A DNA stretch of 64,000 bases from Oopsacas minuta (GCA_024704765.1 JAKMXF010000144.1:186001-250000); one strand, 5' to 3'. Shown: positions 27,265 through 64,000, counted from the first letter of the stretch. Notes: generated by a model not told the origin, from the letters alone. Numbers and translations are program-made.

Positions 27265-30200
27265 ATGAATAATATACAAGATACAAAAGTAGAAGAATTC
27301 CTAAAGGCACTTTCTACTGCTAAGCAAAGTCTAAACCGATCTGAGCAAATATTAGGTGTGAAAAGTGTCCTTACAGACACCGAGGACATTCTGTCAAATT
27401 CTCCCACTTCTACCACTTTAGATGGTCTCTTAAAATACGACACACCGACACATTCCTATGTCACTACAAGTCTAGCTAGTTTCCATGGTGACGCACAAGG
27501 AATGCCAAATAATAGATCACCATTTGACACCTATTCAATGCCACTTGAGCCATCTGAGCTTGACACTCGACACAATCTATTCCAAGGTGTTAATGGCATC
27601 ACAATCGATCCTGCCACTTCGCGACTCAAAAATGACATATTATCACTTAACTCGTAAGTAGCAATTTAAAAATATTTTAATTATTCCATATTATGACACC
27701 TATAACACAGGGCGACACAATTTGTCACAGATGGTGAGAAGGGATTCAGAGAGGACAGTCTGGACAGACGTCTGGGGGAGTTGAGAGAGGAGAACAATCG
27801 ATTGGTAGATCAATCCAGAAGGAGTCAAGGAATTATTGATGACTTGAAACTGAAACTAAGGACTGGAACTAACAAATTAGAGCAGTCACAATCTGATTTA
27901 GCTGATGAGTTGAAACAGAAGACACTTTTGGAGGACAGGGTGGTTTCTATGGAGTCTAAAATACGCGCCATACTGCAGGTAGATATAAATAGAACTAAAT
28001 CTCATTGGTGGTTAACTTTTGTTCTTATTACATGGATAATTGGTTCATTTCATTCGGTGTTTGTTAGGAATTTGAGTCTCAGAGGTCACGTACTTCAGAC
28101 CTAGAACTCCAGCTGACTGAGCGGTGTAAACACGTGACTAATCTTGAATCAGACTTGAGTACACGATCGGAGGAGGTTAAGACCCTGAAGAGGTCATATG
28201 ACACCGTGTCTCGCACCCTGGAACAGACCGTGTCAAGTCAGGCCCGATTGAGAGAGGCCCTAACACAGAGCAAAGAGAGGGAGAGAGAGGGAGCGATGCT
28301 ATCTGATGAGAGATTGGCACAGCTACAATCAGCTGAGAGCAAGCTATTCAATACACAGGTTTTGATTTTTTCACTTTTTGTCAAACTTTTACTAATCTAA
28401 TATTAGCAACAATTGGAGGAGTCTAAGAAAAGTCGTTTCGATCTTCACTCGTCTCCTAGCAACGGATTAGCAGTAGAGAATGTGGCTTTGAAAGAAAAAG
28501 TGTCAGTCCTTTCCAAACAGGCTTCTCAGTTCCAATTGGAACTAACAACAGCTAGATCGCAGCTTAAACTAATGGAGAGTTTAGCTGTTAGATTGGAGAG
28601 TCCCTCTCCTGGCATTGGAGCTGGAACTAAGTATAGTTCTGGTTCCGGAGAGAGAATTAAGTCAGAACTTGATAATAAAGATAGACAGGTGACTACACAT
28701 TAGTTTATATTGTATTGGAACCTAATTAATCATAGTTCCGGTTATAGATCCGATTGCTAGAAAATCAGCTGACTGATAAGACACGTAGCTCAGCTGATCA
28801 CGTAGAACAGCTGCAACAATTACACAAACAAATAAATAATCTCAGAAGAGAGAAGGTAACCATAATTGCATTTATTTGTTTGTTTTTTACTCTAATAATT
28901 TTTTCTACCATCTCCGCCACATTTCTGTCACACTTCGCATACCACCTCCCTCTCCACGGCCCCTAACAAACAAACACAATTATAGTTCACCATTTACATC
29001 ACAGTTTAATAAGCTTACCTGTACTTTATTTATCATATTATCAACCACCATGTGTCGTATAGATATAATTACTCTAGAATGTCTAAAAATAGAAAAGTGT
29101 ATTCCAGCAATTCTATTATTATCCTAGCACTCTATGTATAGCACAGATTATGTAATTGAGTTTATTCTAGATTAATTCTAAATATAGAAGTGTTACTTTA
29201 TAAAGCTTCTATTCATCTATATAATAGGATTTTATTAGCTAAAACTCAGTAAAATCAAATCAACAAATATGTCTCTAATAATCAAAATATTCCTGATCGA
29301 GGATTGGAACAAGGAACCGTCTCAGATACGCCGATTCGCATGGGACACCGGATTGAGGTTCGCCGAATTATGTGAGAAAGTCCTCAACTTATATCCTACT
29401 CTAATTGGTAGCGATCTCATACTGAAATGGAAGGATGAAGAGGGCGATTGGATCGATATCTCCAGTGACACCGAATTACTAGACGCTGCCAAGGCTATTG
29501 AAGGACAGCTGTTGAAATTATGGGTGTCAACTGAGAAGAAGCCTAGTGAACCAAAGGATCCTTGTATGGACTGGCCCCGAGATTGGTGGTGCCATCGCGG
29601 TGGTGGCAGAGGTGCCTGGCGCGGTTGTCGCAAAGGTTTCCCCGGCAAGGAACACAAGATCACCCATTGGGGCTACGTCTGTGACGGTTGTGAAGGGGCC
29701 ATTGTCGGTAGTCGTTATAACTGCAGGGATTGTCCGAACTACGATCTCTGTCAGGGCTGCTTCGACCAGAAACTACATAAGGAGCATTCCTTTGTGGAAG
29801 TACGGTTCCCAAAGAAAGGACGACGTGGATACTCACGTGAAATGGAGAAAGAATTCCTGGAATCTGTCGGGAACGGAGTGGCAGAGTTGCTTGCGCCTCT
29901 TGACATCAATGTGGATGTAGAAATTGATGAGAGGCCGACAAAACAGGAGGAACCAATGGAGTCCAAACAAGAACCTCAACCGGAAGAACCAGAAACAGAA
30001 CCTGAAACTATTTCTGAACCAACTGCACCATCTCAGCCTGTCCACCCCGACCCAACCCTGTCTCACCCTCCTCCACAATTCGTCCCCTCTGACGTAATGC
30101 CTAGCCCTTACTTCTATCAACCAATGGCACCCTTCCCCCCCTTCCAACATGTCCACTTCCCAGGACACATTCCAGGCGTGCCACCTCACCACCCACACCC

Positions 30201-33200
30201 TCATTTCTTCCCGCCACCTCAGGAGTACTTGTTCCAGATCCCTGAGGACATGACTCCTGTCCAGAGGAAGGCTATGGAGACCCTGCGTGAGATGGGATTC
30301 GATATCTCTAACAGCAAGCTGATCGAAGGTGTCCGTAAGAATGGTGACAACATCCAAGCCACCGTTGAGGAGATGCTTAAGAAATAGTGCGCCATTTGTG
30401 CCACTTTAGGCCCATGGTAACTCAGGATGGTAATTAGATCTTGGTTGCTATGGTAGTAAGTAAAGTATTTAGTATTAGTATAAGACTCATGCCTCTTCAT
30501 GTACCAAGAACCTCTCACATGAATCAAACAACAAAAGAGAAGAAAAGTTGAATTCTTGTGTTGTTTGTTTGTTTGTTATTGTTTATCTCTAATAAAGTGT
30601 GTTACATATACTTTAGTCTTATTTTAATAGGGGAAATATGTTATAAGGCCACTTCTGGTGGGATATACTACCTACAGTGGAGTCTCCCAGAACGGACACA
30701 AGCGATGTTCCTAACGTGTCTGTTATTCGGAGAGTCTACGGTAATATCTACTTAACACCTGTGTACCCCTCTCATATACTGTAGTGCTAATTTTGAGATC
30801 CTGTGTGGATTGCTGTCGTCCATTTTCTGAATCTGTGATTCACTGGTCTAAGTGTCTATTTAGGACTATATATATACGAGCCTTTGGCTCGTCGCTTCGC
30901 GATGAACTCGGCGCACTGCACCTCAAGGTATTCAACGGGCAAACAAACAAACAACAATTGAGATTTAATAATATTGATAAATACAGGAGATACCGGTTAT
31001 AAGAACACTCTTAGTGTATTACTAAAATTGGTTCTCATTGCCAGTGTGTTAGTATCATAACTCTGATATGAGAGTACTTTTCTTTAATATGGTTTCTACA
31101 TACAAATGTGCTTAAAGGAAGTGTTCTCATAACCGGTATCTATACCGGTTATGAGAACTTATGTCCAGTCCCCAACCATGTTCTTATAACCGTCATTCAT
31201 GTATATATTATTGGAACTATAAATAGGAACAAACTAAAGATGGTTTCGACGGGAAATTGAACGCTGAATTGAGTAAGTTAAGACTCTCCCACTCAGGATA
31301 CTCAAGGGATATGGAGACACAATTAAGTGGCTGTAGTGAGAAGTTGAAGGTGACAAAACGTGAAGTAGAGACACTACGTAATCAGCTGATTGAAGCTAAA
31401 CGGAAAGAAGTGGCATTAGTGGCACAAAATGAGACACTTTCGACACAATCTGCCACTTTAACTCATAAATTTGAACTGAATAGCATAGGTAAGTAATTTA
31501 TTAAATTATCTCTAATAATAGTGTATGGAAAGGTGTGAAAAGTGGCTTAATGTGTCCTAATCAAATGCTCACATCTAGTGCTGTCTGTCGGGATATTTTC
31601 AAAGTTTTCCTCGCTCGATCCATCGCGACAGCTTTCACTTCTTGCTCGCTTTCATTCAAAATAGTTTCGTTTTGTATCACAGACTGTCTCTTCAGCATTC
31701 CCATTTTCCTCTCCCCTTCTGCACTCCCTGGTCTATCGGGGTAATCCTCTGGAATAGTTGTCTCCTCGTCAAATGAATTAACCTCCACCAAGCTCCTCCT
31801 GCGTACCACTCCAAAAGTAACACCTTTCTTAGATTTCTTCACTTCTTCAACAATTACTTCTTCTTTCATAAATCTCAAAAATCTTTTCGCATAAAATGAC
31901 GGTTTTTGAACTGAGATAGTTTCTTTGTTGATCACGATCGATTTCACTGCGTGTTCGATTCTTTTTTTCGCTCGGAAATTCTGTAATATATCTATAACAC
32001 CTATGAAGAGTATCACAAAATCACCATCAGGAAGTTTGGCGGGGAAACCACCAGGTGGCACAGTGGCTAAATGTGTCGCGAGTTCGATTGAGTTCTTAAT
32101 CGTTGGACAGTCGTAACATGAGTTCATATTGATAGACATTCTACTTCGAAGGATAGATCTGGGCTTCTTTATAGTGCAACTAACCTGTGCCACATTTTCT
32201 GCCTCTTTTAACACCTGTGTCACATTGTGTACCCCCACCAATAGGCTGTAGTCCATGATATCAAAACTTTCTAACACGTCACAATCACGTTTCAAAACGT
32301 CCATTAACAGATCGCGTTTGTCCTCTGTCATAATTATGCCTTTTGGAAATTTATCTTGAAAATCGATGTCTTTTTGTGTTGGTGGCATGGCGCCCTGTGC
32401 CACTTCAGTTTCAGGAGCTTTTCTGTGATAACTCGAGCCCTTTAGATCGTATTTCAATTGATACTTAATATTTGTCGGTAGGACATTGTTCATAATTACG
32501 AATCGCATCGATCTAATCACAGTTTGGTAACCGAATAATCCGAAGAATTTAGGGATTAATGTTTTACTGTTTTGATGCAGGTTCATCCAGTAGCCGGGGA
32601 GTAACTGTTGCAAGAACCTCGCCTCTTTGTCTGAGACCGTTTTCAGGATATAGTTGTCGTCCTCTGTGATGAATAACAAGGATCCACTTGCTCCGGGGTT
32701 GTGTAGAGCTTTAAGTGGCATCTGACAGATGGAATCGATAAATTCGTTTTGATTAATGCCGAATTGTTTCCGCAAATGATGGAATGTTTCGCTCGCATAA
32801 CTTTTGAATGTAAAAGAATTCGAATTATGCGACGGAGTCTTTCCTGAACCTTCTTTCGGAAAGCTAGTTGACTCAATCGAATTGAAGTCCCGCATCAAAA
32901 TATCCTTTTTCCCTTTCGTATTCAAAAGTGCATGTTCAATGCCCAACTGGAGGCAACTGAGTATTTCCATGTGTTCAGAAGTTGTATAGTTCAGATTTGA
33001 TATCTCTGCCATTCTCCCTATTTTATACAAAAATGAAAACTTTCAGTGAAAGGACTCCAGATTGTTTTCTGAATTCATTTATTTATACAACGCCATATGC
33101 GTAAGAACTCTAAGTAATTCTGGTGTTACTGGAACCATAGCTTATAGTTCCAGTTTGTGAGTGGCATAAGGTTAAATAGAGTTCAAACGAAAGATCAGTT

Positions 33201-63656: not shown

Positions 63657-64000
63657 ATGGAGAAACTGATACAATTATTGGAGAGAGAGGATAATAGAAC
63701 TTGTGCCGATTGCAAAGCACAGGACCCCCTGTGGTGTAATTTGTGTGTTGGCGCGTTTATTTGCGAGGAATGTGTCCGAATTCATCAGAGCATATTTGAA
63801 ATTAACGAAAGGATTATTAAAATCCAAGATTATAACTGGTCAAAGACGGAGATCGATAGTTTGGATGGAAATGGGAAAATTAATCAAGAATTAGAGAAAT
63901 ACGTGCCGTCCTATTTTTCCCGTCCTACTCCTGGTCAGGAGAGGGTCTATGAAGAGATATATACGCGTGCTAAGTATGTAGATAAACTGTTCACGTCTCT
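63657..64000 (+). CDS. ADAP/centaurin-alpha-like ArfGAP-domain protein, partial (absent from the ORF track because no stop lies in the window)
   Basis: LLEREDNRTCADCKAQDPLW..GAFICEECVRIHQ..VPSYFSRPTP..YTRAKY parallels ADAP1. Confidence 0.85.
   Translation, partial: MEKLIQLLEREDNRTCADCKAQDPLWCNLCVGAFICEECVRIHQSIFEINERIIKIQDYNWSKTEIDSLDGNGKINQELEKYVPSYFSRPTPGQERVYEEIYTRAKYVDKLFTS

Follow-up and report, generated by a model that had tools for sequence, protein, structure and literature searches.

Four whole intronless genes lie inside introns of three multi-exon genes in a single stretch of the genome of the glass sponge Oopsacas minuta. The stretch that was analyzed, referred to here as the window, comprises 64,000 nucleotides (nt) of contig C144 (C144:186001-250000), and all coordinates are window-based. 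The hosts are a coiled-coil gene, a prolyl 4-hydroxylase alpha gene (P4HA) and TEX11. The coiled-coil gene holds two guests, a p62/SQSTM1-like gene and a PIP5K gene, P4HA holds a zinc-finger/DUF3626 gene (ZnF), and TEX11 holds an ADAP-like gene. The explanation favored here, with a probability of roughly 0.8, is ordinary nesting of genes in introns, in a glass-sponge genome that has been strongly compacted.

Each of the four guest open reading frames (ORFs) falls wholly between the donor and the acceptor of one host intron. All are full-length ORFs with Pfam domains, and each of their orthologues in the relatives (51-73% identity) likewise has a start and a stop of its own. The only introns longer than 2 kb in the three hosts are the four that bear a guest, whose ORF takes up 42-91% of the intron and leaves 325-1454 base pairs (bp) when it is subtracted. 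The remaining host introns appear to measure approximately 30-830 bp as estimated from the gaps between exon-like open frames, a reading that makes most of their boundaries approximate. The position of each guest is kept in two or three other glass-sponge assemblies; junctions were compared across four species for the coiled-coil host and TEX11, and the P4HA flanking exons are collinear in two relatives. From these comparisons of sequence, it is strongly implied that both flanks of each guest belong to one host transcript, and the shared positions indicate that the nests predate the divergence of O. minuta from the other sampled glass-sponge genomes. A first-pass annotation of the window had proposed that every intron over 2 kb that could be delimited houses a whole intronless gene, with an ArfGAP in TEX11 as a possible additional case, and had recommended a synteny check with other sponges. 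The proposal is borne out by four introns in three hosts, the TEX11 case proved real from sequence past the window end and from three relatives, and the synteny check found every nest shared by two or three other glass-sponge assemblies.

The coiled-coil host gene (27265-36337, plus strand) consists of at least 12 exon-like open frames, with inner ends that are approximate except for those of exons e5, e6 and e7. Exon e5 (28748-28855, plus) closes with a phase 0 donor, AAG/GTAACC, found at the same position in four species. It is followed by intron A, a guest-bearing intron of 2371 bp (28856-31226, plus) with conserved splice sites. On the same strand as the host, this intron contains the p62-like guest (29269-30387, plus), an intronless gene with PB1 and ZZ domains (Pfam E-values of 2.7e-09 and 1.8e-12, respectively). 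The 3' untranslated region (UTR) of the guest (30388-30610, plus) terminates in TAATAAAGTGTGT, includes an AATAAA at 30591-30596, and is conserved with a mean column identity of 78% across the comparison with L009 and L004. Exon e6 (31227-31488, plus; 87 codons) is an internal exon located between both guests, with a TAG/ acceptor in phase 0 and a G/GTAAGT donor in phase 1. Beyond it lies intron B, guest-bearing and 2087 bp in length (31489-33575, plus), again with conserved splice sites, which holds the intronless PIP5K gene (31561-33012, minus; Pfam PIP5K 2.1e-76) antisense to the host. Exon e7 (33576-33832, plus; 3' end approximate) then opens after a CAG/ acceptor and completes the split codon in four species.

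A search with PIP5K led to six close relatives on long ENA contigs, with identities of 62-73%, and the genomes of three of these six were compared with the window (L004, L005, L009-L012). By exon-by-exon tblastn (50-87% identity), the 12 host pieces, p62 and PIP5K are collinear and identically oriented in L004, L005 and L009. The four splice sites around e6 agree in position and phase in all four species. Exon e6 is devoid of methionine in the three relatives, and an in-frame TAG/ acceptor stands at its start in all four species. The read-through past the e5 and e6 donors is not conserved, as both its length and its sequence vary between species. Because e6 lacks a methionine, has matching conserved phases and is bounded by unconserved read-through, it is most likely an internal exon that is joined to e5 across p62 and to e7 across PIP5K.

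The coiled-coil host itself is, as far as the exons tested indicate, lineage-restricted, with no relative outside the glass sponges. Pfam assigned no family at the cut-off to 10 of its exons, and a protein atlas search with exon 1 gave no usable match. An exhaustive HMMER search of 1.84 billion representatives with the last exon returned two single-exon fragments from glass sponges and no full-length host protein. The name CCDC18-like, initially attached to the gene, is therefore not sustained by the family and relative searches of the tested exons, which included no direct comparison with the CCDC18 sequence. A 28-nt direct repeat with 79% identity is also present in intron A (28871-28898 and 30568-30595, plus), made up of (TTTG)n followed by CTCTAATAA. 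The copy at 28871 begins 15 nt past the e5 donor, and the copy at 30568 is the poly(A) region of p62 itself. For the former, a role as cryptic 3'-end signal of a short host isoform is conceivable, as is chance.

The P4HA gene (47250-54855, minus) is recognizable from its P4Ha_N region, TPR_P4H region and 2OG-oxygenase catalytic exons, both by Pfam and by alignment to PDB 7zsc_A. With all three of these parts present, it has the full composition of a collagen prolyl 4-hydroxylase alpha subunit. The exons from 54855 down to 52593 (minus) encode P4Ha_N, the TPR region of P4H and the first part of the catalytic domain. They are followed by two tandem exons, hA (approximately 51702-51761) and hB (51599-51661), which together span 51599-51761 (minus) and both end in ...RIATIL(F/Y)Y/GT. 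The guest-bearing intron of 3817 bp (47782-51598, minus) runs from hB to exon i, and 91% of its length is the guest ORF. This guest is an intronless zinc-finger/DUF3626 gene of 1163 amino acids on the same strand as the host (47882-51373, minus; Pfam DUF3626 1.4e-16). Two AATAAA hexamers (47841-47859, minus) are found 25 and 38 nt past the guest stop, which places them 60-75 nt before the host 3' splice site. Exon i (47713-47781, minus), beginning with LSDVEQGGATVFP, is the first host exon after the guest.

In terms of the human P4HA2 catalytic-domain chain (7zsc_A), exon f corresponds to residues 88-148, exon i to residues 185-207 and exon j to residues 208-238. Of the P4HA HxD...H motifs, HYEPHYD is encoded upstream of the guest and TRHAGCPVLVG downstream. 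Since exon f and exons i and j align on either side of the intron, the guest-bearing intron interrupts the catalytic domain, with the metal-binding HxD part on one side and the distal His/Lys part on the other. In both L006 and L007, a DUF3626 guest that keeps its native C-terminus resides in the same P4HA intron, after the same duplicated exon pair. Searched singly against the PDB, hA and hB gave no match, and their identity comes from reading of the sequence and conservation in the relatives. These tandem exons are similar to each other, measure approximately 60 nt each, recur at L006:9734-9903 and L007:9698-9871, and look mutually exclusive. Next to P4HA is a TRAF gene (55045-56376, minus) with a counterpart in the more distant relative L007 and no match in the L006 locus of the closer relative, which amounts to a local difference in gene content.

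The same locus accounts for an error in the public protein record. A 1220-residue O. minuta protein named 'Prolyl 4-hydroxylase subunit alpha-1-like' (P0121) is a chimera of guest and host that maps to 47253-51373 (minus). In this model, guest residues 1 to approximately 1134 are followed by exons i, j and k of P4HA, with a GT near 47971 in the guest ORF used as the splice site. As a result, 93% of a protein that carries the name of a prolyl hydroxylase is an unrelated DUF3626 protein.

TEX11 begins near the end of the window and its nest was completed by extending the sequence beyond that end. The gene spans 62649-64000 (plus) within the window and continues to approximately 68335 past it (L002). 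Its identity comes from SPO22 (PF08631), which matches exon e3 with an E-value of 1.1e-25 and a score of 91 bits (cut-off, 27.5). Exon e3 opens at 65725 after TAG/, and the preceding exon e2 closes at 63199. The guest-bearing intron 2 between them is 2525 bp long (63200-65724, plus), with a donor AAA/GTGAGT and an acceptor TAG/GTC that are both in phase 0 and conserved in four species. The guest is an intronless ADAP-like gene with ArfGap and PH domains (63657-64727, plus; Pfam 5.2e-19 and 1.1e-20, respectively), on the same strand as the host. In L008, L014 and L015, where the ADAP-like orthologues have 63-71% identity, e1, e2, ADAP and e3 to e7 follow in the same order and on the same strand. 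The e2/e3 junction is identical in the four species, and e3 has no conserved methionine.

For one relative, two short Logan contigs span just the ADAP ORF together with 25-39 nt upstream and 44-52 nt downstream. Both are genome-collinear, lack a leader and have no TEX11 exon attached. They fit an autonomous guest mRNA, with the RNA origin of the sequencing runs being presumed. Two further features of this locus may be mentioned. Exon e3 is a single exon in O. minuta (L002:3725-4612) and is divided by an extra intron near residue 137 in L008, L014 and L015, a difference that looks like intron loss in O. minuta. Within the guest-bearing intron, roughly 150 nt short of the acceptor, there is a GC-rich patch (L002:3440-3620, equivalent to window position 65440-65620) that matches nothing in Rfam and occurs only once in the 82 kb examined.

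Transcript 3' ends are a point at which guest and host could interfere with each other. The first-pass annotation had anticipated that same-strand nesting would require a way to suppress intronic polyadenylation, and the sequence signals indicate that the problem is real. A hexamer scan located an AATAAA within approximately 200 nt past the stop for three of the four guests (p62, PIP5K and ZnF), and the nearest one to ADAP is 451 nt past its stop. The p62 hexamer, inside the host intron and at the end of a 3' UTR of about 220 nt, is conserved in two relatives. The relatives also retain A/T-rich hexamers in the spacer between the ZnF guest and the host acceptor. For the antisense guest PIP5K, the AATAAA (31497-31502, minus) is only 9-14 nt from the host e6 donor. 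Because the AATAAA signals of same-strand guests are located in host introns, host transcription must pass poly(A) signals that look to be in working order. With its guest signals so close to the host acceptor, the pair of P4HA and DUF3626 would be well suited to studying how a cell reads past an intronic poly(A) signal. Sense-strand (TTTG)n tracts are another feature of 3' ends in the window, found 3-172 nt past the stops of p62, rhomboid, NHL, P4HA and the ZnF guest. These tracts (30559-30574, 39269-39284, 40483-40508, 47215-47226, 47784-47795 and others) are often beside a poly(A) hexamer, have copies elsewhere too, and may represent a U/GU-rich element associated with 3' ends.

The favored explanation combines nesting with compaction. 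Deletion-biased compaction would have brought every other intron down to a length of tens or hundreds of bases, and an intron holding a guest could neither be lost nor shrink below the size of the guest. Because only gene-holding introns would have escaped shrinkage, 'long intron' would have become equivalent to 'intron with a guest' in this genome by a survivorship effect. The published genome paper gives a mean intron length of 341 bp for O. minuta, and at a site where O. minuta has approximately 350 bp, the intron of a less compact relative extends over 2.8 kb and is free of any sizeable ORF. The guests would act as their own transcription units, each with its own ATG and its own stop and usually with a YAG acceptor a few bases ahead of the ATG, a feature shared by most genes in the window. 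Host mRNA would arise when the entire guest leaves with the spliced intron. In the case of same-strand guests, the polymerase would read through the guest poly(A) signal, and host cis-splicing would thereby compete with 3'-end formation of the guest.

Several considerations weigh against this account. The splicing of hosts across guests draws on conservation and reading-frame logic, and the continuity of a domain comes close to proof for P4HA only. The distance from the P4HA donor to the guest ATG, 225 nt in O. minuta and 97 nt in L006, leaves little room for a separate promoter. The filtering effect of compaction is extrapolated from a single window and a single long intron, free of guests, in a relative, and the Logan ADAP contigs are only presumed to originate from RNA.

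That short distance also leads to a different and rather unlikely reading, in which same-strand guests have no promoter of their own and are cut from the host pre-mRNA by spliced-leader trans-splicing and intronic polyadenylation, with each transcript giving either the host mRNA or the guest mRNA. Spliced-leader trans-splicing has been reported in the glass sponge A. vastus (PMC10282587). In the window, 15 of 20 start codons are preceded by a YAG at a distance of at most 10 nt, compared with 31% of random positions (P = 7e-5), an enrichment that matches the footprint expected of a spliced leader such as that of A. vastus. In three species, a TTAG also precedes the ATG of the ZnF guest by 5-8 nt. 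However, a YAG before the ATG is no less a feature of non-nested genes and of the antisense guest PIP5K, so that it is silent on the origin of the precursor. Among the same-strand guests, no YAG comes within 50 nt of the ADAP ATG, and the one nearest to the p62 ATG is 19 nt away; the ADAP contigs from the relative also have genome-collinear 5' sequence in place of a leader. A narrower version is confined to guests of the DUF3626-in-P4HA type, which are located approximately 100-225 nt from host splice sites. Such guests might be non-autonomous, relying on trans-splicing and on polyadenylation 60-75 nt before the host 3' splice site, a proposition that is also doubtful and of low probability. 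If true, a single promoter would supply both an essential collagen-modifying enzyme and an unrelated protein through a conserved either/or choice, an arrangement that could be described as a 'nested operon'.

Two other readings concern the origin and the reality of the nests. Retro-relocation, raised in the first-pass annotation, holds that the guests originated as retrocopies inserted into host introns and are intronless for that reason. In its favor, all four guests are intronless, and the best demosponge homologue of the DUF3626 gene (in Ephydatia muelleri, orthology uncertain) is intron-bearing and lies between unrelated genes outside P4HA. However, 9872 of the 16,340 O. minuta transcripts are single-exon (PMC10282587), and at this base rate of approximately 60% the finding of four intronless guests out of four (P = 0.13) is uninformative; most of the non-nested neighbors in the window are intronless as well. 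No target-site duplications surround the guests, as a search for flanking direct repeats that would be scars of retroposition yielded just the 28-nt pair at 28871 and 30568, which is (TTTG)n plus CTCTAATAA and includes the p62 poly(A) signal. Finally, the nests are old and common to two or three other genomes each, which excludes recent and repeated insertion. Retro-relocation is thus improbable. It is very hard to credit that there is no nesting at all and that the host pieces are separate neighboring genes or the product of an assembly artifact. The public O. minuta annotation does have no hosts modelled across these guests and lists 83 nested genes in total (PMC10282587), and the protein library holds no full-length coiled-coil host protein. 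Against this stand the P4HA catalytic domain that is split around its guest, the methionine-less internal exons with conserved splice phases, and a layout that is repeated in independent assemblies of other species.

Apart from the nests, the window is gene-dense, single ORFs make up the majority of its genes, and no part of it looks like human DNA. The genes identified by Pfam are p62-like, PIP5K, rhomboid, FIT, NHL, HSP70-like, a PB1/UBA gene, ZnF/DUF3626, TRAF and ParcG. Upstream, the coiled-coil host adjoins a giant MYCBP2/highwire-like gene, and this order is kept in the relatives. The giant gene includes a single exon of 2622 codons with PHR and ANAPC10-type domains (19078-26946, plus), preceded by RCC1 and PHR exons at 15850-18776. 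The NHL-repeat ORF (40511-41773, minus) has one in-frame stop at 40751-40753, and NHL-like sequence runs 80 codons further in the same frame; the stop could be premature, a sequencing error or a site of read-through. Scans of the window and the L002 extension with Rfam and for transfer RNAs (tRNAs) identified no non-coding RNA or tRNA in the introns. Pairing between the ends of guest-bearing introns was also considered as a means of bridging long introns in a genome of short ones. It was rejected, as the duplex energies were no better than those of shuffled sequences (z from -0.95 to +1.25).

Nested genes in human and Drosophila offer one point of comparison, as their guests also lie wholly in a host intron and many are single-exon (41% of human guests, as cited in PMC3192792). 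In human, approximately 63% of guests lie antisense to the host, 37% share its strand, and the introns are huge; in the O. minuta window, three of four guests are on the same strand and guests fill 42-91% of their introns. Host and guest signals in O. minuta also come within approximately 100 nt of each other. An excess of same-strand nests, as surmised earlier, does not follow from three cases in four (P = 0.15 against the human figure of 37%, PMC3192792; P = 0.31 against 50%). The related suggestion that at least two hosts, the coiled-coil gene and TEX11, look like centriolar or meiotic genes holds for TEX11 only, with P4HA being a collagen-modifying enzyme.

Spliced-leader operons of nematodes, tunicates and others resemble the nests in their tight same-strand packing and in having an acceptor just before the start codon, and glass sponges do possess spliced leaders. 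They differ in that the downstream 'cistron' of O. minuta would be inside an intron of the upstream gene, with host exons resuming after it, and in that a polycistronic precursor is hypothetical here.

The closest known system is that of A. vastus, for which 2432 nested genes (12.4%), 'many of which are conserved', were described (Francis et al. 2023, PMC10282587). There too, whole genes are located in introns of others in a small, compact hexactinellid genome, and the nests are abundant and often conserved. The idea that nesting is recurrent and genome-wide is in this respect upheld by the literature as a trait of glass sponges, and the pattern is not a new kind of genome organization. Unlike the present analysis, the A. 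vastus paper gives counts, and does not deal with orientation, the relation to intron size or 3'-end signals. The same paper puts the low counts of nested genes, including the 83 of O. minuta, down to gene-prediction settings, and the O. minuta genome paper does not mention nesting. The four nests described here are missed by the public annotation, with one of them mis-modelled as a fusion. What is added to the published pattern are four delimited nests conserved across species, a corrected gene model, guests that nearly fill their introns, and a simple explanation of why the long introns of this genome would be the guest-bearing ones.

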